DNA of 64,000 nt, from the NCBI GenBank assembly GCA_907165135.1, contig OU015566.1, positions 6,076,001 through 6,140,000 on the forward strand, read 5' to 3'. The DNA is from Oikopleura dioica. Taxonomy: Eukaryota > Animalia > Chordata. The notes under the pieces were generated by a model. It was not told the origin of the DNA. It was given only the letters and a program-made list of their open reading frames with translations, and did no database searches. Shown here piece by piece: positions 7,867-62,800 of the stretch. A program made the position numbers and the translations under genes. How positions within the stretch are numbered: the stretch's first letter is position 1; the number at the start of each line of letters is the position of its first letter.

Positions 7867-7997
7867 CTGAGCACGGCAACCTGTGTAGAAAACCACGATT
7901 AAGATCTGAAAGGTTACGCCAGAATACAAAAATTGATTAGAATGGTTATTATGCGAAAATTTTTAAATGACCCTGACTCAGATTTAATTCACAGGTT
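7867..7997. mobile_element. Degenerate copy of the CTGGGCTCGGCAACC MITE family with an interrupted right TIR
   Basis: Left arm CTGAGCACGGCAACCTGTGTAGAAAACC; right arm GACCCTGACTCAG...CACAGGTT, then telomere-like repeats. Confidence 0.55.
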
Positions 7998-35640: not shown

Positions 35641-35807
35641 CTGCGCTTTGCAACCTGTGTATAAAACCTGAGTCAGGATTTGAATATCTTAAATGAAAAG
35701 CTAAGCGGCTTCGCACGTAGATAAAAAAAGACTGTAATAGTAATATCGCGAAGCCGTAAGATCTTCAAATCCTGACTCAGGTTTAATACACAGGTTGCCG
35801 AGTCAAG
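35641..35807. mobile_element. Intergenic copy of the CTGGGCTCGGCAACC MITE family
   Basis: Inverted arms GCAACCTGTGTAT.AAACCTGAGTCAGGATTTGAA; TSD not recognisable. Confidence 0.75.
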
Positions 35808-37106
35808 CTGACGTTTTTTTCAACGAAAAAGTCGTCAAATCCCCTTTTTTCCCTTAATTTTCTTAAAAAGGAAGGAGACACGTACCGAGTTTTTGTCGAG
35901 TTTATTTTCAAGTGTCATGAGCCGGATGGAACCGCCTTAAATCTTGTGCGGATTTCCTAAAATTCAACCGCAAGGAATAAAATAATGCATGTTACGACCC
36001 TCAAATTACAAGTCGCATATCTTCACTGTAGCTACTGTAGCGATAACTAGTTTTGAAGCTTTCAAGATTAGAATTCTTCAATAAAAATCCGCTTGCTACT
36101 TGGAAGTCTAAAAATGAAGCACGATGTAATTACAGCTCTGATAAAGTCAGGGCATTCCTTCAACTTTTCGCGAACTTTCTAAAAACTAAAGCGTCTGAGA
36201 TAGATGGCTTCCGCATTATGACAAGAAAAGAAAGAACGCCTAAATCTTTCTAAAAAAATGAAGTCCAAAGCATTTTTTTTCGGGGAATTTCTATCCATTT
36301 TTAGACCAATCAGATGTACAGTGAAACCCTAACTTAAGGCCAAGCAACTTAAGGCCACTTTTTTGAAAAATCCCCAAAATCTGTCATTCGCCTTAACGGC
36401 CAATCAGACATCAGAAAAATATTATAACACCGTTCAAAAAAGGAGGGTTGGAAATTTACCTTTTTTTATCGATTTTCTCTGATATTTGATTGGCCTATTA
36501 GTTAAACAACTAAATGCAAACATCTGATACTATCAGACTGATAGGTCGAAAATTTGACCAAAATTTTCCGGAATTCATGCTTGTAGTCTCATTTTTCAAA
36601 AGGCTAAAATTTATAAATTTATAATTTTATAATTTATAAATTATAAAAAAATCAAAGAAGTGAGTCAATGAGCAGCAAAATTGCCAGTTCATACAGTCAT
36701 ATTTTTCAGGAGATAAATTCATTACGGTTTTTGCGGAATGACGTAAATATTTTCTTTTGAAATACCATTCCCCAGATTACATTCGTATCTATCCGGACCT
36801 AACTTCAGGTTTGCGGTATTTTGATCCAAGGGTTCTAATAAGGCAAAAGCAGGAATCGTTAGAAGTTCAGAAAGTCACCGCTTTCGGAAAATCGTTGTTG
36901 CAAACAATGTCAAGCGGCGAGTCAGATAATGAATACTGCTACGTTCGCAACCTCTATCTGTCAAAGCGAAAAAAATTTTATTCAAGTGGAATCACCTTTT
37001 GTGCTCTCGCTCTAGAGAAAGTGCAACTTTGCTTATTCAAAATACCGCATTTTCATTTTACCGAAAATATATTGACGGTGATTTTGATAAATATGATTTC
37101 CCTGAC

Positions 37107-37531
37107 CAGAGTTGCAAATTTGCTGAGCTGAGTGAGCTGAGCTGGCTGTGTGAGCTGAGCAGTCGCTCAGCTCAGCTCAGCTCAGTGATTTTGGAAAATG
37201 ATCTGATCTGCTCAGCTCAGACAATTTTCACTCAGCTCAGCTCAGCTCAGCTCAATTATTTTCGAGCATGATCTGTTCTGCTCAGCTCAGCTAAGCTCAG
37301 ACAACTATCATTTAGCTTAGCTCAGCTCAGCTCAATGATTTGAGTACAATTTTACTACCAAAAAACAGTAAAAAACAGCTCAGCTCAGCTCAATCAGCTC
37401 AGCTCAGCTCAGCTCCGCTCCGCTCAATGACCTCCGAAAAAGGCCAGCTCAGCTCAGCTCAGTAACCTCCGAAATAGGCAAGCTCAGCTCAGAGAAATTT
37501 TTACTCAGGTCAGCTCAAATTTGCAACTCTG
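37107..37531. mobile_element. hAT-type MITE rich in (CTCAG)n
   Basis: 16-bp TIR CAGAGTTGCAAATTTG; perfect 8-bp TSD TCCCTGAC (37099-37106 and 37532-37539). Confidence 0.9.
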
Positions 37532-37989
37532 TCCCTGACCGACTTTTTTTGTCTTCTGAGAATCGTTGCTTCTTGGAAGTGAGCAAAAGTCTTGAATAAT
37601 AAGAGCAAAAGAAAACCAGTTATTTCCTCTTCGGCAGAAGCCCTCCCTTTCTAGCACTAGAATCGAAGAATAGGGGCTTGTCGTTTTTGCCCAGTTCACA
37701 GAAAAAGGAACCAATTTTTCTGAAAAGAGTTTTGATTGTTCGGTAGGCAAAATAGAGCAATCTTATTGGTCTTCAAAAACATACTTCTTTTTCTTGGTTT
37801 TTGCCAAAGAAACGGGAAGAACCAATTTTCGGAACAGATTTTAATGAGTAGGGTTTTGATTGGCCGGTAGGCCAAATACAGCAATCTTATTGGTAATCGA
37901 AAAATTCACTTCCAAATATTTGTTTAGTCTGAAAATCGACGTTAAAGTACGCTCTAAATTTGCATTTTCTCGATTTTCCGGACTGTATA

Positions 37990-38383
37990 CAGTAAAAACC
38001 CAAAAATTTGCCGGTTTTCAGATGTAAATTCCCGAAAAAGCGGCCAAATTCTGGGTTTTTTGCCGGGTAGCCAAGTTTCCCCTTCAAAAAGCAAAAATTC
38101 GAAATTTTTGAAAATCGGCATGATTTTCACATTTTTGATGAATTTTGTTCAAATTTTTGCTTGTTTGAAGACATTCTTATTAAAATTTAGTCATTTTTAA
38201 TGATTCAAACACTTTAAAAAAGCTAAAAATGATCAGGAATAGCATGATTTGGGCCGAATTCTGATTAAAAATTTTTTATTTTTGGAAAAGCGGCCAAATT
38301 TAGGGTTGATTTCAGGTTCCAAAAAGGCGGATTTAGAGAAAAAGCGGCCAAATTTTGGGTGGGCAATTTTTGGGTTTTCACTG
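37990..38383. mobile_element. Tc1/mariner-type MITE
   Basis: TA|CAGT(A/G)AAAACCCAAAAA...TTTTTGGGTTTTCACTG|TA. Confidence 0.8.
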
Positions 38384-38676
38384 TATACAATATGCTTCTA
38401 ATCTTAACCCTAACTGTAATCTCAACCTCTTCAATCAGCTCCTGATCAAGTTAGAATGAAATCATAGAGTTACAAAATTTTAAATATTATTATTGAAAAA
38501 GATGTGTCCTTGAATTTAACGCGGTGTTCTGAAAAAACATCAATGTTGTTTTTTTATATCTGCTTAGAAGAAGAAAACGCTCTATTTTTCTATTCCTACT
38601 CTGAATAAAATCAATTGGAAACTTTTCTTGGAAGTTTGAACTTTTGAATCGCAGTCAACAAATAAGGCCGCCACGG

Positions 38677-38699
38677 GGCCAATGCATAAACGTCAACCC
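38677..38699 (+). promoter_or_regulatory. Conserved upstream element shared with gene A
   Basis: Identical 23-mer to the reverse complement of 15893-15915. Confidence 0.6.
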
Positions 38700-39579
38700 T
38701 CTAGCCTTATTCTGTCTGAGTTATTCGAGCGGCGTCTAAAGCGGGGCAGAGAACAAACTCTCGCTTACGCTGATCTCTGACCCAAAATACTTTACGAGCG
38801 CGATTGCTTTTTTACCGGAGTTGCTCACTTTGGCGGCTTCTACGCTCAAGCACGTAAATAGGAAAAGTCAATGAATGCATACTCGAACCGAGCGGGGAGT
38901 ACCAAGTCAAGTGCTCGCTAAATGGCTTTTGGAAAGTATAATTTTGAGCACAAGAAATTTGAATTTTTCTTCGAAACAATCAATTTAAAATTATTGAATC
39001 TTGCAACAACAATTACGACTGACTAAAAAAGAAACTAAAACAATTTATGGAAGTGGATGTCTGGATAACCAATAAGATAGCTGTCTTTAGCCTACCGGCC
39101 AATCAAAACCCTGATGCTTAAAATCATTTCCATAAATTGGTTAAGCCCTAAAAAATACAGTTTACTTCACTGATTTGTCTAATGTTATTTTAAAGATATA
39201 TAATAATATAAATAAATATTGTTTTAATAGATAATACAGCAGGTCAAATACAGTAGGTCAAATACAGCAATCTTATTGGTATCCAGAGATGACATTTCCT
39301 TTTTGCATTTGCCTTAAAAAATGTGGCTCTATTATCATTTTCTATTTTTGCTTTGACCCATATTTTTGAGCTCAACCAAAAATTCAGGCGACGACATGAA
39401 AATACAGCAACGTTAATCTAATCGAAAATTTCCAGGGCTAAAGAATGAGATCAATCAGAGGAAGCGGACTTATCCTGGGCTGGGCGGCGCGCAAAAGTAG
39501 CTTTACGCGCGGCGTAAACGAACTCGCGCGCACCACCGTGCACCATGCACCGCCAACGACGACCCATTGACATGAGCTG

Positions 39580-39615
39580 GATGCCACCTTGCGACCCAGT
39601 TTCCAATATAAGCGC
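39580..39615 (+). promoter_or_regulatory. Core promoter of gene C with a TATA-like box, conserved in gene A
   Basis: GATGCCACCT(T/G)GCGACCCAGTTT(C/T)CAATATAAGCG is present upstream of both C and A (~15328-15361, minus strand). Confidence 0.65.
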
Positions 39616-39666
39616 GTTTATGGCCCTTGCTCAAATCATACTCAGCCAAAGAGAAAAAACGAAGAA

Positions 39667-42600
39667 ATGAAGCTGTTGTCAGCAGTCATTTCTTCAGCTT
39701 TAGCTGCCAGAGAGCCAGAGTAAGTATTTTTGCGAATTTTATTTTTTATTTTTTTTTGCAATTTTTTTACCAATTTATAGTTTTTTTGGGAAAATTTCAT
39801 CCCCTATTCTGTTTATTCATAAATCTGATCGAAAATTCTAGTGCCGAAAGGCGACTCGAGAAGATCACAGCTCGAGCAACTGAGCTCAATGCATTCGTCC
39901 AGTCCTACGACAAATCATCCCAGAAGCAAAAAGACTCCGTTGACAAATGGGTGACCCGACTCCTCGCCGACCTCAACAACATCGACACGTCCAAATGCCC
40001 CCTTCCAGCGGAAGAAGATCGATACAACGACGAAATCGACACGATCGAAGATCTCTGCTCCGGCGCTGAACGAGTTCCCTCGATGATTCGAAGCTACGCT
40101 AGAAGATTCGGCTGCGTGGAAGGATTCCCAAAGCGAAAATTCTTGGAGAAGGTGATCAAGCGATCCCATAAGCTGAAAAAGGTCGCCCTCCGAGCTGGAC
40201 GATGCAACAAGCCCGCTCCGACCACCGAACCAACTCCAACCGAGGAGCCATCAACTCTCGCCCCAGTGACTGGCGTCTGTGACGCGGACCAACACGCTGT
40301 CTGCAGCAGTCTCGGAAACTCGGAGATTTTCTTCGAAAACGAATGGACTTGCCGAAACTGCTTCCGAATCAGAGCCTACTACGGAACTGGCGGTGGCTTC
40401 ACGTTCAACCCAAGAAAGGATTTCGTCAGCATCAAGTTCACCGAGCCAGTCTACTTCCAGAAATGGAACCATCCAATCCATCCGGACGGACCAGTTGAAG
40501 TTGCAGGAAGCAACAAGCACCACTGGAAGATGAACTTCAAGGAAGACGGCAACTTCCTTTCTGGAATGATGTTCGACGCTGAACTCATCACTTCCGATCT
40601 TGACCTCTGGGTTGATGGCCAGTGGATCATCGACTCTGCCCAGTCCTGCAGATGCAAAGACGGCCCTCCACCACCACCCGAATGCGTTCCAGCTGATCCA
40701 TGCAGCGGACGAGAAAACTGCGAAGCCTTCGTCGATAGCTGCGGAATCACTCCATCCAGAAACAACAATATTGCCACAACTACTGGTTCGCCAGCTTTCA
40801 AGGTTTCCGCTGAAGTCAAATGCGGAGAGATTCCTGATGATTGGCAAAACATCATCCACATCAACGCTGGCAGCAGATGGGACGTCCTTGGCGACAGATA
40901 CTTTGCTCTTTTCGCTGGCCCTGAGACGATGAAATTCAGCGCTCCACTCAAAAACTCTGGAAACGTCCCCGGCGGCGGAAACTTCATGGTCAACCACTAC
41001 CCGAGCTGCACTCCTGGCGAGTGGAACAAATACCAAGTCGAGCAGCGATATACCGACGCTGAAGACACTCTCGAGCTCACCATGTCGATCGATGATGAAG
41101 TCTTTGTCACTCGAATTGTCGACGTAGCTGATGCTTACAGCGGTGATCTCTTTGTCGATGTCTCCAACGACTATCACGATTCTGCGACTGGCTTTGAAGT
41201 CAGAAACTTCTACCACCAGACCTTCCCTGAAGCTGAACCTTGCGACCCAGTTGACCCATGCGAGGGACGAGACAACTGCGATACTCTTGTAGATAGCTGC
41301 AGCATCCGACCTCAGCACAGCACTCAAATCGGATCAGTCGAAGGAAACGCTGTCTACAGCGCTAGCGTTGATGTTTTCTGCCGCCGAACTGAAGGTCACT
41401 CCTGGCAGAGCGTCGTCCACATGACTCAAGGTGGATACAGAGAGAACTTCGGAGACAGATACTTCACTATCTGGCAACGAGATGATGGAAAGCTCAAAAT
41501 CAACGCTCCTCTCAAGGGCAACACTCAATTCGACGAGGTCGAATACTTTGTCGACTGCGAAGATAACTCCTGGACTAACATCGCTGTCAAGCAAACTCAG
41601 ATCGATTTTGGCCGACTCGAACTCACCGTCTTCCAAGATGAAAACGCTCTCGGCTCCAACATCATCCACCACACTGATGCCTTCGTCGGCCCAGTTGAGG
41701 TCTGGTCCGGAAACAGCTGGTTCGAACCTGCCAGTTTCTTCAAGATCAAGAACTTTGTCCACTCATCCCGACCCTATGAACCTGAGCCATGCGATGCAAC
41801 TGATCCATGCGAAGGTCTTGAAAGCTGCGAGACCTTCCAGGACAGCTGCGGAGTCGCTCCATTCAGAGGAAACCGACTTGCCGAGTCTAACGGACATCTC
41901 GGATTCAAAATCTCCGCTGAGGTTCAGTGCACTGACCGAGTTGCTCCTTCCTGGGAAAACGTTCTCCACGTTCACACTGGCACCAACCGAGAGAACTTCG
42001 GTGATCGGTACTTCACAATCTGGAAGGAAGCCAACAAACCCGACGGAATCAGAATCGTCGCTCCGGCCTTTGAAAACCCTCTTTACGAACTCAACGCTTA
42101 CGTTTCCTGCTCTCCCGGCTGGCATACGTTCACCGTCCAACAATCTGAGTCCAGCAAGAACTACATGCTCCTCGAAATTTTGATGGACGGAGTTGTTGTC
42201 GAATCTCAGGAAGTCCGAAAAACTGATACATACCAGGGCCCACTCTTTGTCGAAGCATCCAATGAATTTGCTTGGCCGGCTGCCTATGATCACGTCGTCC
42301 GAAACTTCTACCACCAGGACATCACCTGCTACGATCCATGTGAGGGCAAAGATAACTGCGAGACCTTCATCGATTCTTGTGCCATCAACCCCGTTCGAAA
42401 CAACCGCCTCACTAACATCGTCGCTTCCGTCAACCACGTCACATCTGTCGATGTCCTCTGCACTTACGTCGAGTCCAGCAGCTACATGAACTTTGTGCAG
42501 ATTACAAACGAGTCCATGGACGGAAACCCAGGAAACCGATTCTTCGTTGTCAACCGACGACCTGACTCTCAAGGAATCACAGTCACCTTCAACAACCCCG

Positions 42601-45092
42601 ATGCGTCCAGATACATGTCCGGAACAACTCCCTTCGAATGTGTCCCCGGCGAATGGTACACCTTCCAACTCGAACAAAGACAAGACGAAGCCAACCCAGC
42701 TGTCACCAACATGGTTGTCACCATCAACGGCGACGTTGTCAAGGAAGTCTCCACTGCCACCAGCGGAGTTATCAATGGCGGCGAATTCAAAGTCATGGCT
42801 TCGAACAAGTGGAACAGCGCTGCTGAGGACTACTCAATCCGAAATTTCTACTACCAGACCTTTGAAGAAGTTCCTTATTGCTTTGATCCATGCGACGGAG
42901 AAGATGGCAACTGCCAGACTCTTGTCGACTCTTGCGAAATCAATCCATCCCAAAACAACCAGCTCGATTCAATCACCGCTTCTGTGAATTTCGACTTGTC
43001 TTTCGATCTTCTCTGCTCAAACAACATGGCGCACGGAGAATGGACCAACATCCTCTGGATCGTACGAGCCAGGGATAACCAACGAATGATGGGTCTCTTC
43101 AAGAACAGTGATGATCACCGACTCCGCCTGAATACTGCTAACCCAGAAGTCACCGGCACCGCCAATCCCTTTTTGTCTAAAGGATGGAGTGAATGTACCG
43201 ATGGAGAATGGTCAACTATTCGATATCACCAACAACAGAACGCTGCTAATCCAGCTGTCACTGACGTCACTGTAACCAACAACGACGAAGTTGTTATTTC
43301 AGCTAGCTTTGCCACTGGACTCGTGACCAAGGATGAGGAACTCGAAGTCTTCGTCTCCAACCATTTCAACCCATCTGGTTCTGACTACGCTATCCGAAAC
43401 TTTGTCTACAAGACTTCTGAAGAAAATCTCGGCTCTGATCCATGTGATGGCAAAGCCAACTGCGTCACTTTGATCAATTCTTACGCCCAAACCCCGGCGA
43501 AGAACAACCAGATCGGCTCAATCACCGCTGCAATCAACTTTGAAGTTGCTGCTAACGTCCTCTGCACCGACGAAATGGATGTTGATGAGTGGTACAATCT
43601 CATCCACATGACCATAGGCGGCAATAATGGTGAACTCGGTGATCGATTTTTCAAGATCTCGCAGAAGAGAGGTTCTCATGAGCTGATGATCAACATGGCC
43701 AGCCCCGAAGAGGATAACGGAACTCGAGGTACTTTCCACATTTGCACACCAGGTGAATGGAACGAATACAAGCTCGTCCAGGCGCAAAATCCTGACTGGC
43801 CATCGCACACCTACTCGACCGTTTATGTCGACGGAGTTGAGATCTTCCAGATTCGATCTGACACCCACGAAGTCCTTAATGGAGATAATATCGACGTCTT
43901 CTTCTCTGATAACTGGCATCAGTCCGCTGACGCTTATCACGTCCAGAACTTCTACTACCAGACCTTTGCTGATATCGACTATGGAATCATCCCGTTGAAA
44001 GACTGCCGAGAAGAAACTCTCTGCGAAATCGTCGGTGATGACTCTCAAGCCGCCATCAAGGACTACCATGTTGCCACTGTGACAGCTGCAGTCAACTTCG
44101 GAATCTCCGTTGATGTCCTTTGTGAGGCAATGCCTGTTGGCAACTGGTACAATCTCATCCACATGACTATGGACGGTAACAATGCTGTTCTTGGCGACCG
44201 ATTTTTCCTCGTCTCCCAGCACACTTCAACTGAAGAACTCCTCATCGACGTTGCTGATCCAAACCAGCCAAACGGAAGCTCCGGCCGACGCGCCGCATGC
44301 CCAGCTGGCGAGTGGATAACCATCGAAGTCGATCAGTCTCAGGACGCATCTGACCCAAGTGTCACTACTTTCACAGTCAACGTCGATGGCGTCGAGATTT
44401 ACTCTCGATCGGCTGCTACAGAAGCTGTTCTTGCAAGCGGAGAAGTCCAGGTCTACGTTTCTGACCCATGGCACCGAGCTGCTAGCTCCTACCAGATCAA
44501 GAGATTCGTCTACGAGCGATTCGCTGATGTCCCCCTCGGTCCCCAGAACTGCAACGACGTCGACAACTGCGTCATCGTCGGTGCTGATTCCGTCTCTCCC
44601 GTCCAGGGCAATCTTGCCGCCACAATCACCGCTGTCAAGAACTACAAATTCTCGATCGACATCAAGTGCGACCACTCTCTCCCCTTCGACGGCTTCAAAA
44701 ACATCTTCCACGTAACCACTGGCCCCAACGACGGCGTCTACGGTTCTCGCCAGTTTGCCATCTGGAGATCGAGCAACGAGAACAAAATGCACATCACTAC
44801 CGCTAATCCAAAGGCAGCAGGTGGTCACTCGAGAAATTACTTCAACTGCATCGACGGAGAATGGAACACCTACACTTTCGAGCAGCACCAACAGGCTCCC
44901 AACCGACGCCAATGGATCTGGTTTAAACTCTCCATCGACGGAGTCAGACAATACTCCAAACGATTCAACGACGACGACTATCCAGTCCTCGACGGCGAGC
45001 AGATGAACGTCTGGATTTCCAACGAAGCTGCCGACGCTGCTTCCACCTTTGAAATCAGAAACTTTTCTTACGAAAAATACCCAGATCTTTAA
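39667..45092 (+). CDS. Lectin-array gene C (~1767 aa): secreted, 8 LamG/ConA-like repeats
   Basis: Exons 39667-39719 and 39842-45092 sum to 5304 nt. Same 53-bp exon 1 as genes A and B. Confidence 0.93.
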
Positions 45093-46479: not shown

Positions 46480-49400
46480 ACCCTGGAAAAAGAGGACATA
46501 ATGAAGGAGACAGAGGACGACCCGGAATATGACTAGGGTGAATTTACAAAAAAATCAACTTTTTCCCTATGAATGCTGTCTCGTTGAAACTTGGCATGGT
46601 GAAAGATCATGCCCGAGTTTCTTCACAAAATTTTTTCTTTTAAATTTTTTTCGTTTTTCAACCCTTTTCGCCCCCATAAAAGGCTATCTTTTGAGCGCCT
46701 CAAGTGTCGGTGCTCTTTTTGGCCGGAATCGAAGCGCGGTCGGCTTCTGATCATCTTCCGAAAAAAATTTAGTGAAGCTATCACCGATGACTCAGAATCG
46801 GCATTTTAGTGTTACGTAACACTGTTATGTAACATAACTACTAAATGACAATAAGTCCTCCACTAGAATAATTGATGGTAATTTGGTGAAATTTTGGGAC
46901 GGTAGGTATTGGCCCCAACTAAAAAAATTGTAATTGAAAATTTTTTGGTCTGACCACGTGATCACGCGATACTGGCGATTCTTCTTAAAAGGAAGACTCG
47001 ATTTAAAATATAAATTATTAAAAAATAAGAATGCTATTTATGGCAATATTTTTGGCCCCGTTCCTTGGTTTTTTAATTTAAGGGGCTTGACGGCCCTTCG
47101 GGCCGTCTCAGCCCCGTTCCTTGGTTTTAATTTAAGGGCTTGACGGCCCTTCGGGCCGTCTCAGCCCCGTTCCTTGGTTTTAATTTAAGGGCTTGACGGC
47201 CCTTCGGGCCGTCTCAGCCCCGTTCCTTGGTTTTTAATTTAAGGGGCTTGACGGCCCTTCGGGCCGTCTCAGCCCCGTTCCTTGGTTTTAATTTAAGGGC
47301 TTGACGGCCCTTCGGGCCGTCTCAGCCCCGTTCCTTGGTTTTAATTTAAGGGCTTGACGGCCCTTCGGGCCGTCTCAGCCCCGTTCCTTGGTTTTAATTT
47401 AAGGGGCTTGACGGCCCTTCGGGCCGTCTCAGCCCCGTTCCTTGGTTTTTAATTTAAGGGGCTTGACGGCCCTTCGGGCCGTCTCAGCCCCGTTCCTTGG
47501 TTTTAATTTAAGGGGCTTGACGGCCCTTCGGGCCGTCTCAGCCCCGTTCCTTGGTTTTAATTTAAGGGCTTGACGGCCCTTCGGGCCGTCTCAGCCCCGT
47601 TCCTTGGTTTTAATTTAAGGGGCTTGACGGCCCTTCGGGCCGTCTCAGCCCCGTTCCTTGGTTTTAATTTAAGGGGCTTGACGGCCCTTCGGGCCGTCTC
47701 AGCCCCGTTCCTTGGTTTTAATTTAAGGGCTTGACGGCCCTTCGGGCCGTCTCAGCCCCGTTCCTTGGTTTTAATTTAAGGGGCTTGACGGCCCTTCGGG
47801 CCGTCTCAGCCCCGTTCCTTGGTTTTAATTTAAGGGCTTGACGGCCCTTCGGGCCGTCTCAGCCCCGTTCCTTGGTTTTTTAATTTAAGGGGCTTGACGG
47901 CCCTTCGGGCCGTCTCAGCCCCGTTCCTTGGTTTTTTAATTTAAGGGGCTTGACGGCCCTTCGGGCCGTCTCAGCCCCGTTCCTTGGTTTTTTAATTTAA
48001 GGGGCTTGACGGCCCTTCGGGCCGTCTCAGCCCCGTTCCTTGGTTTTTTAATTTAAGGGGCTTGACGGCCCTTCGGGCCGTCTCAGCCCCGTTCCTTGGT
48101 TTTTTAATTTAAGGGGCTTGACGGCCCTTCGGGCCGTCTCAGCCCCGTTCCTTGGTTTTTTAATTTAAGGGGCTTGACAAAGGCCTGGAAATCTGAGTTG
48201 ATCAGTCTCAGTTTCGTCCCCAACCCCTCCCACCTCCATCCAATGTAAAAATTTATATTTTTCATTTTTAAAGTCTAGTTATGGTTTTTATTGATAATTA
48301 AAAAAAACTTCTCTAACGAGAATTTACTTAGAATTTTATGAATCCAAAATAAAAATTGAAAAAAAATTAATATTCGGGCTCCGGAGCCAAAAAACCGAAA
48401 AAAATTGGAAAAAAATCGGTTTTTCGGAGGCTCCACCCTTAAAATTTTTATTAATTATATTTTTACGGGGAAGCTTTGGACCAGCCCTTTTTATGATCTA
48501 TTACAATGCAAAGAATTATTTGTCTTCCACCAAGTTATTTTCTTCCACCGGCTTTAAAAAAGGTCCTCCGGGTCATTCCTGATCGATCTGAAAGAGCTTC
48601 ACTAAATTTTTTTATTTCAAAATGATCAGTTTTTTCAGGCGCTTCGAATGAGCCTAGTCACGTTCTCGTAACTTGAGGCGCTCAAAAGTTGAGTTTTTCG
48701 GCTATTTTAGAGGGCGCTAGAAGAAAATCACGTGACATATTTAAAGAAAAACTCTTCGATATGAGATTCATATGCATGGGAAAAATTGCATACAAAATTT
48801 GAAAGCCGTACGACCCCTAGATTAAAAGTTGATTTTTGTAAATTCACCCTAAATATGACCTCACGCAAATTTATACAGAACTTTATAGGTGATCTCCGAA
48901 CATGATTGAATTTATCGATAGTTTTATTCAGCAAAGTTGGGCAAGGAAAAATCGCCGACATCAGCTTTACTGACGAGTTTTCTGAGCTTTCTTACCAGAC
49001 GAATATCGACAAATATTTAGACTTAGCAACGGATCAAAAATTAAAGATAATTTTTTCAAAAGCCTTTCCATCTTTTCGATCCAAAATTCAGTGCTTCTCG
49101 TACACTGCCAAAAACTCTACCACCTAGACGAGATCTTAGAAAAGAAGCGCGCAAGTGAACTCGCTATCCGAGCTGAGCTTAAGGCGCTTTTGCCGCCGAA
49201 AATCGCCAAATTTGTCGTTCCAACTTTGGAGGTCAAGCAAGTGCTTCTCAACCCCGTCAAGTTTATCAACAATCTCGAGGACGAGTACAAGGATTTTCGC
49301 GAAACAAATAAAGGTGTGGAGGAAGAAGACTCGTTGGAGTATCTTTTCAGAGCTATTCTAGGAAAGCGGCTTTCCTACAGCGATTGAAGAACAACTCATT

Positions 49401-52400
49401 AGTAGTTATCAACAAAAAGAAAGCCAATAAAAGCGTCGTTAATTTTACGAATGAATGGCGTTTACTTGAAAAACTACAGTTTCCACAATGCAGCTCGATT
49501 CTGCAAAGAACTGGCAATGAACAGACTGGAGGGCTTTGCCATTCAAGTCTTTCAAGGGATGAAGGCAAAAGGCTTCGAATATTTGACCTCGATCGTCGAC
49601 AAAGAAGGATATCGCCGCGTACCGTTGATCCGAATCGCCCAGCGAGCTGGTCTTTTTGAATTGCTCTCCCAAGATCTTGTGCAGCGTCAGCTCGATATTA
49701 TCTATGCTGGTGGATTAAAGAAGAGCTCTTCAAATTTCTTCAGCCAGTCGACAATAGGTATCTAATGCCAGCCAATTTATTCCCAAATGTGCGTTCTTTC
49801 AGTTTATATCCTTGGATTGGCGACGATGGGACTTTTTCCAGCAATTTTCTGCCCCGATTTCATCAAATTTGACAAAACAAAGTACTTTCTCAGGAACTAG
49901 GGTGGGCCAATTTACTAATCATAAGAGGCAAAATTGGAATTCGCTTGCCAATCAAAAGTCGATTCTGGTTGATCTTGGGGCAAGGGGTTCTTCGGCCAAT
50001 AAGAGTCCAGTATTTGCTCGATGAGCCAATAAATGAATATCTCTTTATAGTTTTGCCCACCCTAGGTCAGAAAGTTCTGGCGGGACATTTTCGGACCAGG
50101 CTATGTAACATTCGAAGGCGGTTCGCTCAAAAGATTCAACATTTCAACAACCTCCATGACCAAAACTACTTCAAAACACCGGCCGATTCAAAAGCAGTTC
50201 TCAATTTCCGAAGAGTCAAACACTTCTTCCAGCCCCGACGATTGCATCATCGTCTCCAAGGGCGAAAAAGTCAACCATTCCTTTTCCGACAAATTCCGCG
50301 ACTTCCTCTACCGCTGGCTCACCTGGAACTTTTCGACAAAAGTGATCATGCTCAACAACCTGATCACCGACTGCATCATTCTCTTCTTTCTCATGTACCT
50401 TGCCGTGGCGAAGCTCAGCTATCACTCGAACCAGTGGGACTTTGTTTTCATCGCGATCTTCGGTTGTCGGATTTTCCACCGGTTGCGGACTTGGTTTGCC
50501 AGAAAAATCTTCTTCGACTCTGAACACGCTTGGACAGTGCCAATTCGAATCGGTTTCGTCGAAAAAGTCAACATCTTCGCGATCTTGATTTCCATCCTTT
50601 TCATAACTACGAGATGGGAATTTGTCAATCAAACGCCTCGCTACGTTATGGGCCCCCTTCTTCAAGACGACGCGAGTTTTTACATTGGAAACTACACGAA
50701 AGACATTGAAACATTCCAAGCTGGGCTCGGCAAATTGACTAGAGAGCCTAGGTCAGGGTCTGAAAGAGCTAAAATGAAAAGCCGCGCAGCTTTGCTAATA
50801 TAATCATTGAAATCTATCAAAAATTCTGGCGAAGCGGCTTTTCTCATTTTAGTCTTTCAGACCCTGACTCAGGTTTTCTACTCAGGTTGCTAAGCCCAGA
50901 TTCCAAGGCTCCAATCAAAAGGCGGTTCGAGAAAAATCCGACTTTGTCATGGAGTTTTACAACGATTTTAAAAACAACGATACAAGATCGTTCAACTACT
51001 ACGAAAAACTGTACGATGGAATCAAATACATGCCCTTCCGTAGCCCTCAGAATTTCAACAACGCGATCAACAACTACTTTTTCGTCCTGCCGCCTTTTAT
51101 GGTCGGTTCTTTGTACAAAACTCCGCTTGGAAATTCGACTGTTGAAGATAGAGAGTGCAGGGGCAACATCACTCACAGAATGAGAAATAACAAAGAAGAC
51201 AAGGAAGAAGACTACCACTTTGCAGAGTGCTGCGAAAACAGGAATGTTAGCTGAAATTATTCACCAAGAAGTGTCTTTTTTTTGCCTAGCATTTTCAAGA
51301 TCGATTCGGACTCTTACCGACGGTCAAACGGTCAAAGATCAAGGAACGAATGTTGTCATCAAGCTGCTGAAATCATCAGAGAACGCTACAGTTCCAATCT
51401 GCTACTTTAGCAGAGTCAAGAATATTTCATATCTTTCATTTGTCTGGAACGTTGTTTTTCTAAATGAAATGCACTTCATAATGTTGCTCGAAAACAACCT
51501 CCGAAAGCATCAACATTATGATTTTCTTTTCAATTTTCAACTTGCTTCGATTCGCCCGTTTGTCCGTCTTTATCGGTCCTCTGATTTATGCTCTTTACAG
51601 GACTCTTTTCGACGTCCTCAAATTTGTGCCGATTTTTTTGCTCTTATTCCTCGCCTATGGAATCATTCAAAACAACCTTCTTTTTCCCAATCAACAGGTA
51701 ATTCTTCTCTAAATACAATGTTATAAGATGGCCATTTTTAGACAGAACGGGATGATGTTGCTTCTTGGGTTTTCACAGAATTTACGAATATCTTTAACCG
51801 GCCGTTTTTCCATGTTTTTGGAGAAATTTTCATCGCAGAAACAACTACTCATCGATACTACCACATCGAGGTCAGTTTTTTTCTTCGAAAATAATGCTAG
51901 AATTAAACCAAGGCGCCCTGCACGCATGCTTTCGGAGACATAAACTTGGAAGACAAAGTCCGCTGCCCAGAACGTAATGAAATTTCATCCTTTATCATGT
52001 CGGCCTATATGCTGGCTACGAATATTGTGATGGTGAATATGCTCATCGCCATGTTCAACGAAACGTATTTGAAGATGAAAAACGTAAGGACCAAAGGATT
52101 TCTTTTTAGAGCTTCTTTAGAACTCGAAATTGATCTGGGCGACAGACAGATACAAGTTCATTTTGGAAGAGTATCATTATTTCCCAAATATTTTTATTGG
52201 AGGAATTTTTCAATTTATCTTGTGCATCTGGTTCCTCATTTGCTTATTGATCCGATTCCCCGGTAAGTTTTTCAGAAGAAATTTTTCGTAATAAATTCAG
52301 TTTGGTTGGTCGTGAAAATAAAACGAAGAAAGGAAAATGCCAAGTCTCAAACAATTTTGTTTGACCAGCGCCTCGTCGGGCGAATTCTCCCAAGAAGGCC

Positions 52401-52450
52401 TGTTCATTCTGATCCTTTCGTTTTCCGAAGAAGGACGAAGGAATTTGTCA
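46480..52450 (+). CDS. TRPM-like cation channel (multi-exon; ends approximate), interrupted by two DNA transposons
   Basis: MHR4-like segments (LEYLFRAILGK; PLIRIAQRAG..LLSQDLVQRQLDIIYAG), S1-S3 in ORF 50156, S4-S5 (LLRFARLSVFIGPLIYALYRTLFDVLKF...LAYG) and S6 (AYMLATNIVMVNMLIAMFNETY). Confidence 0.8.
46534..48851. mobile_element. 2.3-kb non-autonomous hAT-type element
   Basis: TIR TAGGGTGAATTTACAAAAA..TCAACTTTT with long imperfect inverted arms; perfect 8-bp TSD AATATGAC (46526-46533 and 48852-48859). Confidence 0.88.
47055..48178. repeat. Minisatellite: 20 full units of 53-56 bp plus partial units, each with a GC-rich hairpin
   Basis: Unit TTAAGGG(G)CTTGACGGCCCTTCGGGCCGTCTCAGCCCCGTTCCTTGGTTTT(TT)AAT; units differ only in homopolymer length. 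Confidence 0.98.
50721..50899. mobile_element. Palindromic MITE (CTGGGCTCGGCAA family) inside TRP coding sequence
   Basis: TIRs CTGGGCTCGGCAA / TTGCTAAGCCCAG; perfect 8-bp TSD ATTCCAAG (50713-50720 and 50900-50907). Confidence 0.92.
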
Positions 52451-52785
52451 TAAGCGACGAAGACGGCCCAGAAGAAAATCCAGCTTTTGAAATATTACAC
52501 TAGAATATCAAATAAAAATGCAAGATATAATTCGCCTTCAATATATAAGACAAAGAACAAAGCCAACAGTACCGAGCTTTGAAAAATACCTAGAAAAAGT
52601 AGGTTTTTGAAGCTGAAAATTGTGTCATGGACCGTTTAAGTTGTCAAACAAAAGCCAATCTAATTGAATATATCTTTGAAAATAGCCTTTCACAACAAGC
52701 AAGTTCAACTTTGTTCAAATAATTGACAAGAGAAGTTTATTCGCGAATGTTGTAAATCGAAGATTTGAATACCGATAGGCCAACG

Positions 52786-53524
52786 ATGAAACTTGCTCTT
52801 TCTCTTTTTGCGCTTTCAAAAGCCAACCCATTAAATGAGAGGGTCTTTCGCGATGCCGTGGACAAAATTGCCCGTGAGAGCAGCAAGGACCGCGAGGATT
52901 TCGCTAGATTTGTCAACAATCGTGATGACACGTAAGATAGTTTCCTGATTTATCTTTGCTCATAAAGTTTTAACCGTTTTTCGACAAGTTTAGTCTTTTC
53001 GAGTTCGCTTGGGAATACTGCCATGAAGTTAACGAGCTCGAATTTGACGCAGGTCTTGACATTGATGAGCTTGCTCATTGTGGAACAGCTCTATGGGATG
53101 AGATCGGAGCTCTGATGTACGAAGACAAATATCCTCATTTAGGACAGGTTCTCTTCAGCCTCTGGGATGTAGCCGATTGGGATGGAAGCGGCTTGGTCGA
53201 CTTTGATGAATTCCGCTTCGCGGAAACCATGCTTGCCGGTGTTTACGCTCTTGTCGCTTTCGACCGACACGATCGCAACGGAGATCGAGATTTGGACCTT
53301 GACGAGGTTTCTGAGTTCGAACATGACCGTGAGAAAGAGAATTATTCATCTAGATTAGATATTTTCCAGTGATGCCCGAGGGCGAGGAGTTCGGTAATGA
53401 GAGAGCAAAAACCTTTCACGAACTCTGGGAAGAAGCAGAGCTGTTCGGCGGCTACGAGAAAACTTACATTCCCGAGGTTGCCCTCTTCTTCCTTGAACTC
53501 TGGCGAATGGTGTTTGACAATTAA
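52786..53524 (+). CDS. Secreted acidic EF-hand protein (3 exons)
   Basis: Signal peptide MKLALSLFALSKA; EF loops DWDGSGLVDFDEF and DRNGDRDLDLDEV. Confidence 0.75.
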
Positions 53525-53678
53525 GGCTATTCTTAAGAATTTTTCGACAATATCGAATAAAAAAACTTACATCTTATTCAAATTTTAAAGAGACTTTTTT
53601 ATTGATAATAAGGTGACAATTGGTTTCTAAAGAAAGTTGATCGTTGAGAAAAGAACTTTCGAAAAGCAAGCAATCAGT

Positions 53679-54168
53679 TTAGAGGAATTCGGGGAGTCCC
53701 TTGTAGACCTCAGCGGGGCACTTTGTGCCGACTTCGCAGACGTCACATTCTTCGCCATCCTTGAGGCACTTGGCGCAGGAAACGCAGTTGTAGACATCGT
53801 GGTCTTAAAAAAATATTCAAAAACGATGATACGGAGGCATTGTTTTTACCAGGATACTGAGTCTGCCAGTAGGCGAGACCGATGGATTTTTGGCCTTGAA
53901 CGAAGGCAAACTCTTCCTTAGTGCAGTGCTTGATGCACTCGCAAGCAGCGCAGCAGGTGATGCTGAAAGTGCAGCAAAAGCAGGGGGCTTTTTCGTCGGC
54001 GAAGACTGAGGACTCACCAACCAAGGCGTTGGCAGAGGCGGCAGCGACAATTGCAAGAAGGAGCTAAAATAATCATTTTAAAACAATAATTTTGGAGAAT
54101 TTTGGAGCTTTTTTTTGGATTAATCCATCAGATGTACTGTCAAAATTTTATCTGATTGTTACCTTCAT
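53679..54168 (-). CDS. Small secreted Cys-rich peptide (114 aa, 14 Cys, 3 exons)
   Basis: Exons 54163-54168, 53850-54063 and 53679-53803 sum to 345 nt with GT-AG introns. Signal peptide MKLLLAIVAAASA; TATA-like CATATATAAT upstream. Confidence 0.85.
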
Positions 54169-54988
54169 TTTTCCGATTTTTTCAATTAATGATATTTTCA
54201 GCAGATTTCAGCCGATTATATATGGGCGCGCATCTGCGTTTTCCTCCATACTGGCTCCACCTCTTTATGGGAATGCAAATTTAAATTTCGAAATATCATT
54301 GACATCGAAGAATGATACCGTATCAAATACTTTACGGCTTGGCAACCTCTGAAAAAAACCTGTGTCTGATTCAAAAAAGCTGACTTTAGAACCTAACTCA
54401 GACTTTCCACAGAGTTTCCTGTGCGCAGAGTAAGGATATCCGCCAAAAACATTGTCTAAATTGGTTCTATGAGGATAGAGTTTTATGAAAAATCAGCAAT
54501 TGCAATAAAATGCAACAAAAGTGCCAGAAAAGATCTGTTTAAAATCCCGTGTTACCCGCGTATGAGCCTCAAGGATCTCAAAATTTATGACACCGACAGG
54601 ATGGCTGTTTGCCTTCCTTATTGAAATTTTGAAAAGCTCATAAAGATGATAGAAAGTGCAAATGCCGCGCACGAATCTTGGCATCAATTTCGCCAAACAT
54701 GAAGTATGTTTTTTCGAGTTTCCAAGACCTCGCCCATAAGAGTCAATATTATCAATTCTTACCAAATGAACATTTGTAAAGGAAGGACACGTGTGGCGTC
54801 TTCATTGAAGACTCTTCAATACTGCATAATAACGTATAATATGATCATCTTATGGGAAAATTCCAACAGAAAAACCGAACTTTTACTCTTTGTTCTTCTT
54901 GTTGTGTCTTAAATACTGTGTGTCCATCTTATTTCAGCCAAGTCTCCTTATCAAGTGACTTTGAACTTGAGGTCATTTTGACTATTAA

Positions 54989-55604: not shown

Positions 55605-56270
55605 TATTTCGCCTCAAAAGTCTCAAAAATAGAGTAATTTCGGAAAAAGGATTAGAAAGGGGTCTGTCGGGAAACATCAGAAGACGCAACCATTTTGCAG
55701 TTAATGCTCTTGCGATTCGGAATCTGTATAGAAACCCTTTATTACTTCCGCATTCTAGAGGTGGTAGAAGAGAGTTGTGCAATTACTTATTGCCAATTAG
55801 CCTTGGTACAGACCAAGGTAATCCTGGCAAAATACTTGCCTACCATAGGAAATGTAAATTACATCTGGAAATTTTCCCAAATGTCAGTCAAATAATCCTT
55901 CCCACAATTTAAGACTTTGCTCATCGCGTTCCATTTGTACTCCTTCAAAAGTTAAAAATATTGATCCAGAAGAGCAGGTCTTGCGCAACGGAAGTAAAAA
56001 TTGATGCGCGACATTTGTCATCGCCTCTTTTCGTTCCCCCCTGGTCAATTGAGCAAACAGCCAAGCCATGTCTTAAAATATCAGGCCATCTTTTGAGCAA
56101 GTCTTACCGTCTTATCCTTCTTCAAATTCCTGCGTCCGTCTTTATCACAACCGCTGAACTTTCATAAAAAGCTTATTTTTCCTTTATAAGAAAGGCTCCA
56201 TTTCAATTTGGCTCAGTAAGGAAAAATTTTTTCCTACAAAACCTGAACTATTTATGAGGTAGAGAACTAT

Positions 56271-56395
56271 ATTATATTATATTATATTATATTATATTAT
56301 ATTATATTATATTATATTATATTATATTATATTATATTATATTATATTATATTATATTATATTATATTATATTATATTATATTATATTATATTAT
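56271..56395. repeat. (ATTAT)25 microsatellite
   Basis: Perfect pentamer array ending 25 bp before the ATG at 56421. Confidence 0.98.
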
Positions 56396-56420
56396 AGAAG
56401 AATCGTCCGAAAAGCTGGAT

Positions 56421-58230: not shown

Positions 58231-58503
58231 ATTTGATTAAACTTTCTTCTTGATTTTTGCGTTCTCTTTCATTACCTGAGACTTCATGCAAGGGCACTTG
58301 TTTTAAAAATTTCAGTTCGAACTTATCGCAAATTCATTCCCACTTGATACTTTCTTTTATCTGAATAATTATGTTATTTTTATTTTATACGGAAGATATA
58401 TTTATTATTTTATACAAAAGCACCCTTTCCGGTCTCACGAAGAATACAATCATATCAAAAAGTATGTATTTATCTTATCCTTTCTGTTAGGATAAAAGCA
58501 GAG

Positions 58504-60558
58504 ATGATTTCGCAAATAAATCGGATACAAGCGATATGGGGACTGATTCTCTTCATTTTGTAAGCGCCTCTTTAAGTTACTAATTGATTCATAATGGCGA
58601 TTCTAGTCTTGTTCTGGCTGTTGTTCTTCCAACGACGCTGATCCCCCGACAAAAAGATAAACTCCAGTGCGAAAATAGCGAGAATGGAAAAGCCCGGGCA
58701 GTTTCTTTGGACAAAAGGCCATTGGGGGACGCAATCAGTTACTGCTCTGATTGCGAAGGGTTCAACTCTTATATATGTGGGGGGAGACTTCCCGAGGTAA
58801 TCTTGGGATAAAAGTAGGGACTATAAAAGATTACTAGATCGAATCGGATGAGTACTGGAATGGGTGCGTCAATAATGCAACTCCAGCAGGTAGAACAAAA
58901 TCAGATTGCAGCGACGTTGATGAACTCAAGTACTTCATTTGCGAGTATGATTTCAACTGTGACGAATGGAAGCTTCTGTTCAAGTAAGATCGAGATAAGC
59001 ATACAGGTGAACGAGTCTAAAATATCAACGTTAAGTTTCAACGAGACAACAAGTACAACATCCTCTACTCCCACAATAACCTCAGTCGAAGGCTTGCCGG
59101 AGTGGATTGAGCCTTCTTTTGACTAGCTAGCTCATACTTTTACGTCTCTGATCTGAAAGCTAGAAAAGAGAGGATAATTGATTCCTGTAAGCCTTCTCCT
59201 CCGCATCTTCTTCAACCACTAGCTCAACTACAACGACGACAACAAAGTCAACTACGATGACAACAACGACGACGACTACATCAACGACAACAACAATAAC
59301 GACAACTCCAGCGACGACAACGACAGCGTCGACAACACCAACAACAACAACAACGACTACTACTTCTACTACAACTACCACAGCAAGTACCACAACAACA
59401 ACTACAACTACTTCTTCTACAACTACGACTACAGACAAAAGACAACCGGTAAAATTCTTCTTGCTTACTTCGATCGACTTCACTATTACAATAATCATAA
59501 AATTTGAACTTAGAGCGGCGTCAATATTATGCTTCTCGCCCCGACTTTAACGCAATCACACGTCATTTCTGGCGATGGACTGAAGAAATCAACTCCAGTC
59601 ATCAGTGCGCCATCTGAAAACTACGCTCAAAATAGCATTTTTGCCGTTGTTAAGGGAGTATTTTTCATTTTCGGAGGAGAATCTGATGATAAAAAGGTCA
59701 TTTTTGTGAAAATATTAAATTATCGAAGACAATTATTAAAGATAGCAAGACTAAGTGGGTGTAGCCTGGTTGACACTGGCTTGAAAACAGGAGGAAGATA
59801 TAATTCTGGATCGACTTCTTCCGCAATCGAAATCAATAACGGGGAGCAAGGTTTAAATTCGATCATTTCATTGTTCCAATATTTTAAGCTTTACTTTGCT
59901 TCGATGTTGAATCTTCAAAAGACTGCGAAATTTTTGATACAACCAGTATCGCATCGACACATTCAACCCAGTTCACGCATCAGAGAGGATCTCTTGGCTA
60001 CTACCTCGGCCAGCCAACGACTGTAGGAAGCGTTCAAAGTGACGGACAGAACAAAGTCGAAACCTTCTCAGCTACAGGGTGGACGAGCTTGCCTGATAGC
60101 CCGAGGTAGACTACAAAATAATTCAGTCGTTATTCTGCTATAGAAATACTCACAACAACTGTTTGGTTGGCTTAGAAAGTGGAGCGATGCTAATGCTCGG
60201 CGGCTATCGTTACGATGGTTTTAAAACTCTCGTTCGAGGTATTTGGCGATTGAAAGAAGGAAGTTGGTCGAAAGTAGGAAGCCTTCCAGAAGTAAGACGA
60301 TAAATTTAGAAAAAGACTTTATCATCATTAATTAAGCGTTCTTCTCGAGTCTCCTTCATGAAATTTGGCAATTTCATCTACCTCTTTAATGGCGCCGGGA
60401 CTGCTTCAAACAATAAATATCCTGAGCAGCGAGTAGAAATCCTCGACGACGAAGTTGTTGCAACTGAAGTTATCGGCCACCACACTTTCTCTTCTAGTTT
60501 TCCCGTGCTCGTTGAAGTCTCTGCTGACTTCTGTGCCCCCGAAAGTGTATTCTTTTAA
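58504..60558 (+). CDS. Membrane-anchored protein: C-type-lectin-like domain, Thr-rich mucin stalk and Kelch-like beta-propeller region
   Basis: N-terminal hydrophobic segment; ...AISYC...GGRLP..., KYFICEY; poly-Thr at 59220-59430; Kelch-like motifs FFIFGG, MLMLGGY, WSKVGSL, IYLFNG. Confidence 0.7.
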
Positions 60559-60684
60559 TTTTCATGCTAAAGCTACTCTGACTTCTCCTGACTTGCATAA
60601 AAACGATTAAAAACTTTCAAAAATAAATAATATGTCACTGATTTTCGTTGTCAGGATTGATTGAATTTCTTTCAGAAGGATCGG

Positions 60685-62800
60685 TTAAATTTTCGGTTTT
60701 ATCATTTTTTCTTGACTTTCTTCTTCTTCATTGTTGTCGCCATTGCTTGTCAGGCAGCAGTAAGATTTGAGTTTGATGAGCGAGAGAGGCGGCAAATTGG
60801 AGAAAATACCGGTGGAAATAAGAGTTGATGCAGCGATGATTCCAAGAGTAAAATACATGATGAAGAATTCACTTTTGAGCATGCACTCTGCTCTGAAAGG
60901 ATGAACAATCATCTGGTAGCTTCTGAAGTCGGATTCATGTAGCTTTTCTTCGAAGCAATTTCCTTCAATTTTGACTCGGTCTTTCAAAATCTGGAAAAAT
61001 ATTGAAACGTCGAATTTAATATTCTCTTACTGATAAGGAGCTGTCATCCACCCGTGCGCAAATGCTGTTGTTTATTTTGTTTTCCTGGTTGACTTGATCG
61101 ATGCAGAAGTCGATGATTAAATCGTTGAGAGAAATCATCAACGCGCATAAAACTTAAAAATAAAAAGTGGTTTTGACAAATTTCTTACTTAATGACAATT
61201 GAGTGATACCAAGCAAGATAGTCAATATTCCCTGAGCTACTGGGGCGCAAAAATATTCGGCTGCCTTTTGCTCAATAATTTTTTGATTTTCGGCGAAGTC
61301 GATGTTTTCCTTCACGCAGCCGGTCTTCAACAAAATGTTCAGTACCAGCATCATCATTTTGATAATCGTGGGTAGGTAGGTAATGAATGAGCAAAGGGGA
61401 GATATACAGGAGATGTATAGGTAGATTTCGATACAGGACCTGGGTTCGGCAACCTGTATAGAAAACCTGAGTCAGGGTTTTAAAAAGACGCGAGAATTTT
61501 GATTTTCAGACCCTGACTCAGGTAATCCAAAAGGTTGACGAGCCCATCACAGGACTTCCATGAACTAGAGTAACTCAGCTAGATTCTGAATTGATATTGC
61601 GAAAAAACTTACCAAGAAATCTTGAAAAGTAAAAATAAACAAGCATTACTTCGAAGGCCTTGAGAAAAAAGCTATCAAGAATTTTATGCTCGACAATTAA
61701 TTTGAATATTTTCGTCAACATCCTTCTCTCTCCGCTTCTCTCCGTTCTCATGAGCAGGAAAATCGTTATCATATGGCTAAGAAGCTTCAACGAGGCACAA
61801 ATTATCAGCGAAATCGAGACCCAATGAACAGGGTCAACTGCGAGGGTGGAACCAGTGTTGTACTCGTACCAGACAAAAACTGGGGGAAGAATTTCGATTA
61901 TTGGAATTAGCGCAAAAATCAAAGATGAAAATATGGACAGCTTTCCGTTGAATTTTGAGTTGACGATGACAAATGCCAAACTACAAGAAATAGTCGCGAT
62001 GAGAAAACACTGTTGAGTCCAAAAGTAAAAGGTTGTGTCGGGATCATATGGAATCATTTTGATTAGATTCAGTCTGTATCGCATTCTTTCCTCGGTCTCC
62101 TTTGCAAAAGATTTCTTGTCAAATATCGTTTTTGTAACTAGCCGTACAGTGAGCATGACAATGTTCATTTCTTGCTCATCAGAAATACTCTCTTCGGATG
62201 ATTCTCTCCGTTTCATGATTCGTCCATTTTCTCGTCCGAAGTAGCTTCTGCAGTTTCCATCAATTACTTCCCTATCACTTTGACCGTTACCATAAAAATC
62301 ACATATATTCGCCGCTTCATCATCAGTCACATTTATTTGCGCCGTTGTTTGGGAAGACGAATCCATGAACAAAAGTTCATCCCCGATTCCAAATTTGAAC
62401 TTCAGTATTGACTTCAATTCTTCTTCAAACTTTCAATCGGATATATATTTTAGAATAAAAATTCGAATTTACCCAACTGACTTCAATTTCTTCAGCTTGC
62501 CAGACAGTCTGAAATCGTGAAAGAACTCTGTTCATTCTCTCTGCTCTTGAGTCCGCTTGGAATGACCGAGCTAGAAGCAACAAAAGTAAAAATCGCATGA
62601 CTTCACTTGATTCTCTAAAAATGAGAATGACAGCTGACGAAACTCCAATTTGTTGAAGGTGTGTAGGCCGGTTACTCTACTGCCCTGATTTTCAAAAGCT
62701 GCAGCCGGAAATTCAGCGTTTCGATGACAATTGAAGTCTTGTTTGAATGATAACAACTTAATTATTCGGAACAAACCGAGTTGAAAGAGACCGATGAACA
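60685..62800 (-). CDS. Multi-pass membrane protein of unknown family (multi-exon, 5' end uncertain)
   Basis: ORFs 62571-62801, 61575-62417, 61154-61357 and 60685-60987 contain several hydrophobic segments and can be joined through short introns. Confidence 0.55.
61440..61547. mobile_element. Short copy of the CTGGGCTCGGCAACC MITE family
   Basis: Arms CTGGGTTCGGCAACC / GGTTGACGAGCCCAT; TSD TACAGGAC (61432-61439) / CACAGGAC (61548-61555), 7/8 match. Confidence 0.82.

Follow-up and report, generated by a model that had tools for sequence, protein, structure and literature searches.

A transposon-derived insertion in a TRP-like channel exon of Oikopleura dioica, a probable intron, and the splice-like features of its family

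Introduction

The stretch of DNA analysed here (the window, 64,000 nt, OU015566.1:6076001-6140000) belongs to chromosome 1 of Oikopleura dioica OKI2018_I69, of the Okinawa lineage (assembly GCA_907165135.1; record of 14,533,022 nt). Its Gypsy polyprotein and an open reading frame (ORF) of 1821 aa are 100% identical to proteins of that record, the ORF being Oidioi.mRNA.OKI2018_I69.chr1.g1601. The window holds several copies of a miniature inverted-repeat transposable element (MITE), one of which, c3, lies within a coding exon of g1602, a gene for a TRP-like channel. We argue below that c3 is probably a transposon-born intron, and we weigh whether its family could be built for that role, as was proposed in an earlier reading made from the letters alone (the sequence-only reading).

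Most ancestral introns of O. dioica have been replaced, and there is continuing debate over where the new introns came from, with reverse splicing reportedly put forward in 2010 as one source. The massive intron turnover to which the sequence-only reading appealed fits what has been published for the species, in which 76% of mapped introns lie at new positions and 11-12% of introns are non-GT-AG, enriched among the new ones, with G[A/C/G]-AG as the known non-canonical class (PMC4122922, PMC8008620).

Results

A MITE interrupts an ancestral exon of g1602

The deposited model of g1602 spans c3 (Table 1). A plus-strand frame open from 50066 enters the element and stops 27 codons on, and a second frame is open over 50868-51251; excising c3 together with one copy of its target-site duplication (187 nt) joins the two as ...KDIETFQ/GSNQKAV... 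(slashes mark junctions throughout). On L004, a scaffold from Tara Oceans that belongs to a related species, the g1602 homologue (L004:2718-3062) is one uninterrupted ORF over the c3 site, and the 17 residues that it has between TK(D/H)(I/L)E and (E/Q)FY(N/D)(D/E)DF equal the spacing in the window after clean removal. Because removal restores the frame, the homologue is uninterrupted and the spacing is equal, we conclude that c3 is an insertion into an ancestral coding exon, with the pore, S6 and TRP-box segments of the channel downstream of it. Protein searches for an empty-site or spliced form of the exon turned up only the read-through ORF of the Tara contigs described next, and an exact look-up of the downstream-exon ORF found it not on record.

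Two Tara Oceans metagenome contigs of another O. dioica lineage (L001 and L002) cover 49702-50872 at 92-93% identity and share the insertion, down to the unusual left arm of c3. The same 2-nt deletion within c3 recurs on a contig from X4, a DNA run from another O. dioica lineage, to which most of the exon differences are also common. By these alignments, the c3 insertion predates the split of two O. dioica lineages. Between the window and L001, 36 codons of the upstream exon differ synonymously and 2 non-synonymously, with 27% of four-fold sites changed (23/85). Downstream, all eight of the listed X4 differences fall at third codon positions of frames inferred from ORFs and homology, so that g1602 is still functional. 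The gene has therefore been held under purifying selection both upstream and downstream of an insertion older than the split, which would require that c3 be removed in frame from the mRNA.

The MITE family and its termini

The four copies that had been reported at 7867, 35641, 50721 and 61440 (c1-c4) are genuine, and the window holds at least two more, one a decayed short copy and one that runs off its end. With one more copy on this chromosome, at a distance of about 260 kb (L034:4889-5006), seven were examined. Copies are non-coding and 108-179 nt long, and their inverted-repeat arms (L and R, left and right) are alike over about 45 nt in every copy; pairing in c3 reaches about 67 nt per arm. 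The family termini read CTGGGCTCGGCAACC, the consensus terminus being CTGGGCTCGG, and a window scan with the terminal 18-mer CTGGGCTCGGCAACCTGT returned 7 arms at no more than 3 mismatches against 0.03 expected by chance. The 8-bp target duplication is perfect for c3 (ATTCCAAG) and matches at 7/8 positions for c4, and none is recognisable at the flanks of c2 or of the L034 copy. The first description, of a family of symmetric MITEs that duplicate 8 bp of target, is thus borne out.

Five arms (c2L, c2R, c3L, c3R and c4L) had been reported to carry GTCAGG starting at position 32 from the end, and they do, as do both arms of the L034 copy. The motif starts at 31 in c4R owing to a 1-nt deletion, at 20 in c1R, which lacks the 12 outer nt (equivalent to 32), and is absent from c1L; among arms that keep their outer ends it stands at +32 in 7 of 9 and at +31 in an eighth. 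The companion claim, that intact ends read CAG or AAG, holds for six listed arms (CAG in c1L, c2L, c3L, c3R and c4L, AAG in c2R) but not for c4R, which ends in CAT. From X4, 1271 contigs map to a 5-kb stretch, where they stack on the MITE arms with many different flanks; their loose ends show an arm consensus, TGGGCTCGGCAACCTGTGTAGAAAACCTGA, directly before GTCAGG, and diverse flanks past the terminal CAG. Such variety of flanks implies many family copies in the second lineage, and the +32 position is a property of the family consensus. When metagenomes were scanned with the arm motif all 26 matches were chance ones, and a search of the whole window against Rfam matched no known RNA family.

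The candidate superfamilies, to judge from the duplication, would be hAT, P or Merlin. Like hAT MITEs, the family has an 8-bp duplication, and the c3 target ATTCCAAG fits nTnnnnAn; unlike them, its termini are CTGGG rather than the usual hAT YARNG (CAG/TAG). No transposase partner was found in the window, where the MITE copies are the sole places with the terminal motif.

Where the copies sit

Only c3 lies within an annotated gene; the other six copies examined are outside annotated genes. Three of these (c2, c4 and the decayed copy) stand 150-600 nt upstream of minus-strand genes, c2 about 600 nt from a kinase-like gene and the decayed copy about 165 nt from the gene at 53679-54168. Read on the minus strand, c4 ends in CAG and its duplication starts with GT; however, nothing coding depends on c4, because immediately upstream every minus-strand frame is closed and the annotation has no gene at that place. 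With 1 of 7 copies exonic, exon enrichment cannot be claimed.

Two further observations concern the surroundings of these copies. A minus-strand ORF of 285 codons (61578-62432), with membrane-protein-like segments, no annotated gene and no Pfam match, is followed by c4 at 30 nt past its stop codon. Both c1 (at 7846-7866 and 7997-8010) and the L034 copy (at L034:4840-4880) adjoin interstitial telomere-like TTAGGG/CCCTAA repeats, and in c1 such a repeat has taken the place of the right arm's outer 12 nt.

The conserved arm motif

GTCAGG is the right half of an 11-bp palindrome, CCTGAGTCAGG, which forms the conserved core of each arm. Because the motif lies inside the palindrome, its conservation can be explained at the level of DNA, and the palindrome could just as well be where a protein binds the transposon. 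It includes TGAGTCA, the AP-1/TRE consensus heptamer, and several copies lie 150-600 nt upstream of genes.

The arithmetic of the sequence-only reading is correct, in that 31 retained nt plus an 8-nt duplication make 39, a multiple of three, for which the prior is 1 in 3. Its consensus arm is likewise free of stops in two of the three frames (1 and 3, with frame 2 closed), which is unremarkable because 55% of random 31-mers of similar composition have at least two open frames.

The RNA of c3 is predicted to fold as a single long hairpin (-98.3 kcal/mol, z = -11), in which the +32 donor is paired with CTGAC of the opposite arm. Such pairing could hinder the binding of U1/U2, or could bring both sites together.

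Candidate splice sites of c3

The g1602 protein reads ...ETFQAGLGKLTREPR/SFNYYEKLYDG..., which places the donor of the deposited model at 50752 and its acceptor at 50986, in the old exon and 87 nt past c3. The segment that the model thereby deletes (MEFYNDFKNNDTR...) resembles the L004 homologue. Within c3, the canonical pairs that are in frame and stop-free are 50752-50899 (+39), 50752-50872 (+66) and two from a weaker donor at 50758. If the G[A/C/G]-AG class is allowed there are many more, for example 50724-50907 (+3), and exact excision of c3 would need AT-AG or CT-AG ends.

The best canonical donor is TAG/GTCAGG at 50752. A GA-to-AG change at arm positions 30-31, present in both lineages, gives it its AG/GT context, and the similar GAG/GTCAGT is the donor of an ordinary 42-nt intron in the g1602 model (51871). 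The acceptor with the best pyrimidine tract, TTTTCTACTCAG at 50885, lies 18 nt past CTGAC, and splicing 50752-50885 would retain 53 nt, out of frame; the terminal CAG has no pyrimidine tract. The model therefore agrees with the proposed GT donor at +32, which is also the best canonical one, and disagrees with the proposed terminal CAG, since it takes 50986 as acceptor. It does not show the predicted outcome of 39 added nt but gives a net change of -48 nt.

Two observations concern other introns of the model. For the one at 51242-51299, a GG-AG variant (51241-51289) fits the homology with L004 equally well. Near 51480-51520 the reading frame switches from 0 to 1, and the only GT-AG intron candidate there, of 25 nt, is not usable; an indel in the assembly or a non-canonical intron may account for the switch.

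Table 1. Positions of the MITE copies, of the candidate splice sites of c3 and of other features in the window.
Feature	Position	Strand	Remark
Oidioi.mRNA.OKI2018_I69.chr1.g1602	49451..53524	+	deposited model, 827 aa (CAG5104850.1), TRP-like channel, spans c3
MITE copy c1	7867..7996		right arm lacks outer 12 nt; GTCAGG lost from left arm
MITE copy c2	35641..35807		GTCAGG at +32 in both arms; target duplication unrecognisable
MITE copy c3	50721..50899	+	179 nt, within coding exon of g1602
c3 target-site duplication, left	50713..50720	+	ATTCCAAG
c3 target-site duplication, right	50900..50907	+	ATTCCAAG
MITE copy c4 with duplication	61432..61555		element 61440-61547, 108 nt; duplication 7/8
Decayed short copy of the MITE	54333..54418		about 165 nt upstream of a minus-strand gene
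Further MITE copy	63980..64000		begins CTGGGGTCGGCAAC...; runs off window end
Palindrome CCTGAGTCAGG	35667-35677, 50863-50873, 61466-61476, other arms		arm core
GTCAGG at element position 32 of c3	50752..50757	+	context TAG/GTCAGG; donor in deposited model
Terminal CAG of c3	50897..50899	+	proposed acceptor; from donor 50752 a 148-nt intron, 39 nt retained
Acceptor AG of the model	50985..50986	+	intron 50752-50986, 235 nt, net -48 nt against the uninterrupted exon
X4 differences in downstream exons	51149, 51318, 51804, 51837, 51840, 52446, 52455, 52464		third positions
Giant ORF, g1597	11698-14790	-	
Giant ORF, g1598	16983-21290	-	
Giant ORF, g1601	39627-45092	+	

Discussion

The explanation that we prefer, with a probability of roughly 0.6, is that the family is an ordinary O. 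dioica MITE, that its exonic copy c3 is a transposon-born intron, and that the splice-like features of the consensus are by-products rather than an adaptation. A non-autonomous cut-and-paste transposon with an 8-bp duplication, long inverted repeats and a variable core, present in many copies and mostly in intergenic DNA and 5' flanks, entered the coding exon of g1602 before the two O. dioica lineages parted, and c3 would have survived as the spliceosome takes the element out in frame. The donor would most likely be the GT at +32, and the acceptor may be the terminal CAG (50899), the AG taken in the model (50986) or some other site. A conserved palindromic motif of the inverted repeat, exploited by a permissive spliceosome, would account most economically for the splice-like features. 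The suggestion that a copy of this family can enter an exon and become an intron thus fares well for c3, which is exonic and would be removed in frame, whereas a geometry built into the whole family is possible but unproven.

Several observations weigh against this explanation. In three oligo-dT RNA runs no read could be used for g1602, so that we infer the splicing of c3 (22 reads of X11, 90-95% alike, fall partly on this stretch and probably come from a paralogue). Moreover, the visible part of c3 (50721-50862 against L001:1020-1150) shows only 3 differences between the lineages over 140 aligned nt, besides a single 2-nt indel by which the stem is perfected, whereas the 177-nt intron of g1602 differs at 20%. 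Inside c3, divergence is about a tenth of that at four-fold sites (Fisher P about 1e-8) or in that neighbouring intron (about 5e-7), which would not be expected if a tolerated insertion were simply decaying neutrally. The copy-specific hairpin loop of c3 is also conserved between the lineages, and a 45-nt intron of the gene (49758-49802) is likewise unchanged. The simplest idea would be selection on the whole of c3 as an awkward but essential intron. Recent introgression is an unlikely cause of the low divergence, as the flanking exon diverges normally up to 31 nt from the element, and conversion from other copies does not explain the conservation of a copy-specific loop.

The arms themselves add to this side of the balance. 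GTCAGG is their best-conserved block (95%, against 80-88% in other blocks; n = 10 arms), and the opposite arm places CTGAC, a branch-point-like motif, about 32 nt ahead of the terminal CAG; these two features would also fit a family adapted to splicing. The deposited model, finally, is an uncertain guide. It leaves out two segments that are conserved with L004, namely S4-S5 (in frame 1 at about 51520-51600) and, following the TRP box, NSKLIWATDRYKF (52121-52177), and adds a downstream EF-hand region through a 905-nt intron; because it is unreliable at these places, its choice at c3 may be ab initio. We considered whether the model could stand in for RNA evidence, since it holds two GA-AG introns (49894-50070 and 51242-51299, both in the context CAG/GAA), which to our knowledge AUGUSTUS takes only from RNA-seq hints. 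The OKI2018_I69 annotation is indeed hint-based (PMC8008620). Given the conserved segments that the model skips, we rejected this use of it.

These same observations bear on the proposal that the family consists of introners with a built-in geometry, in which a GT donor at +32 and a terminal AG acceptor leave 39 nt in the mRNA in either orientation and so seed introns genome-wide. We judge this unlikely, although it is the rival with most to recommend it. The conserved block stands at the required position in 7 of the 9 arms with outer ends and most intact arms end in CAG; in c3 the pair 50752-50899 is in frame and free of stops, the left arm is open only in the frame used, the sole substitution between the lineages in its 31 nt is synonymous (TTG to CTG), and the deposited model uses the +32 donor. 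There is also a precedent in Aureococcus, where 4 nt of the element plus an 8-bp duplication make 12 nt (PMC9860276). On the other hand, the deposited model bypasses the terminal CAG, and that CAG is without the pyrimidine tract of its neighbour at 50885, use of which would shift the frame (53 nt). Only one copy in seven is exonic, a retained length of 39 and two open frames are close to what chance would give, the motif is part of an 11-bp palindrome, and the predicted hairpin places the donor in paired form at the base of a long, near-perfect stem.

A stronger version of the same idea is that palindrome CCTGAGTCAGG supplies both the GTCAG donor (at +32 of one arm) and, on the other arm about 32 nt before the CAG, the branch-point-like CTGAC, so that either orientation yields an intron leaving 39 in-frame nt, that exonic copies are then strongly selected as a whole, and that the family is an active source of introns. 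We hold it to be distinctly unlikely. If it were true, selection on exonic copies would account for the tenfold lower divergence of c3, and the family would be an active source of the intron gains of O. dioica.

It is more doubtful still that c3 is removed by non-canonical or structure-guided splicing at or near its ends, with the mRNA restored or altered by a few nt, in the manner of the MITE-derived introns of Fritillaria borealis or of the hairpin-bearing euglenid introns. The species would allow for it, as 11-12% of its introns are non-GT-AG (PMC4122922, PMC8008620), and so might the gene, with two GA-AG introns in its model. The predicted hairpin of -98 kcal/mol would join the ends of c3, and in-frame G[A/C/G]-AG pairs of small effect exist, such as GG 50724 to AG 50907 (+3). 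However, the AT-AG or CT-AG ends of an exact excision are not among the types reported for O. dioica, and the deposited model picked a GT donor.

That c3 is left unspliced, so that the channel is truncated and the locus is a pseudogene or an N-terminal fragment, is barely credible: read-through does stop 27 codons into c3, prokaryote-style ORF calls on the Tara contigs give the same 215-aa product and the three RNA runs are without usable g1602 reads, yet the insertion predates a divergence of 27% at four-fold sites over which 36 codons changed synonymously against 2 non-synonymously, the listed downstream differences are all at third positions, and the pore and TRP-box segments are open and similar to the L004 homologue.

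As a transposon-born intron, c3 would have relatives in several other systems. Introner elements are DNA-transposon-derived spliceosomal introns known from Micromonas, Aureococcus, dinoflagellates and other organisms (Huff et al., 2016; Gozashti et al., 2022). They carry inverted repeats and target duplications, and either the element, the duplication or the exon may supply their splice sites (PMC9860276). Like them, c3 is short and non-autonomous, has inverted repeats with a target duplication and lies in a coding exon, and we infer its removal; the difference is that here 1 of 7 copies is genic and the family is mainly intergenic. Aureococcus introners with an 8-bp duplication add 4 + 8 = 12 nt, or four codons, to the mRNA (PMC9860276). 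Here too the element nt plus 8 would be a multiple of three by arithmetic (31 + 8 = 39), but the retained piece would be far longer, and the host is a chordate.

Nearer to O. dioica, Gozashti et al. (2022) list, for a Tara metagenome-assembled genome of an Arctic Oikopleura sp., two small families of introners for which neither target duplications nor inverted repeats are given, and in the accessible portions of that source O. dioica is named only in the supplement's list of screened genomes (PMC9860276). An older review counts Oikopleura among the species with introns gained by transposon insertion (PMC3443670). In Fritillaria borealis, another appendicularian, lineage-specific introns with inverted repeats and target duplications are likewise of MITE origin (Henriet et al., 2019); their ends are mostly AG-AC or AG-AT, and they depend on a modified system of U2AF and small nuclear RNAs (PMC11282704), whereas the sole modelled splice of c3 is GT-AG. 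A literature search found no paper on the present O. dioica family.

What we describe is one clear case plus a design hypothesis, and events of this kind are already well described in algae, dinoflagellates and Fritillaria. A shared and dated MITE insertion acting as an intron in a gene under selection would nevertheless be a concrete transposon-born intron gain in O. dioica, and the family-wide geometry, if confirmed, would give a testable mechanism of intron gain.

Other features of the window

Three paralogous giant ORFs, annotated as g1597, g1598 and g1601 (Table 1), show 51-72% identity to the g1601 ORF and have no significant Pfam domain. A fourth paralogue is found at g1535, and JGI metagenome contigs carry relatives. 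Together they represent a repeated gene or element of an uncharacterised kind. Directly upstream of g1602 there is a tandem array (47055-48178) with a 53-54-bp unit, 20.6 copies and 98% matches.

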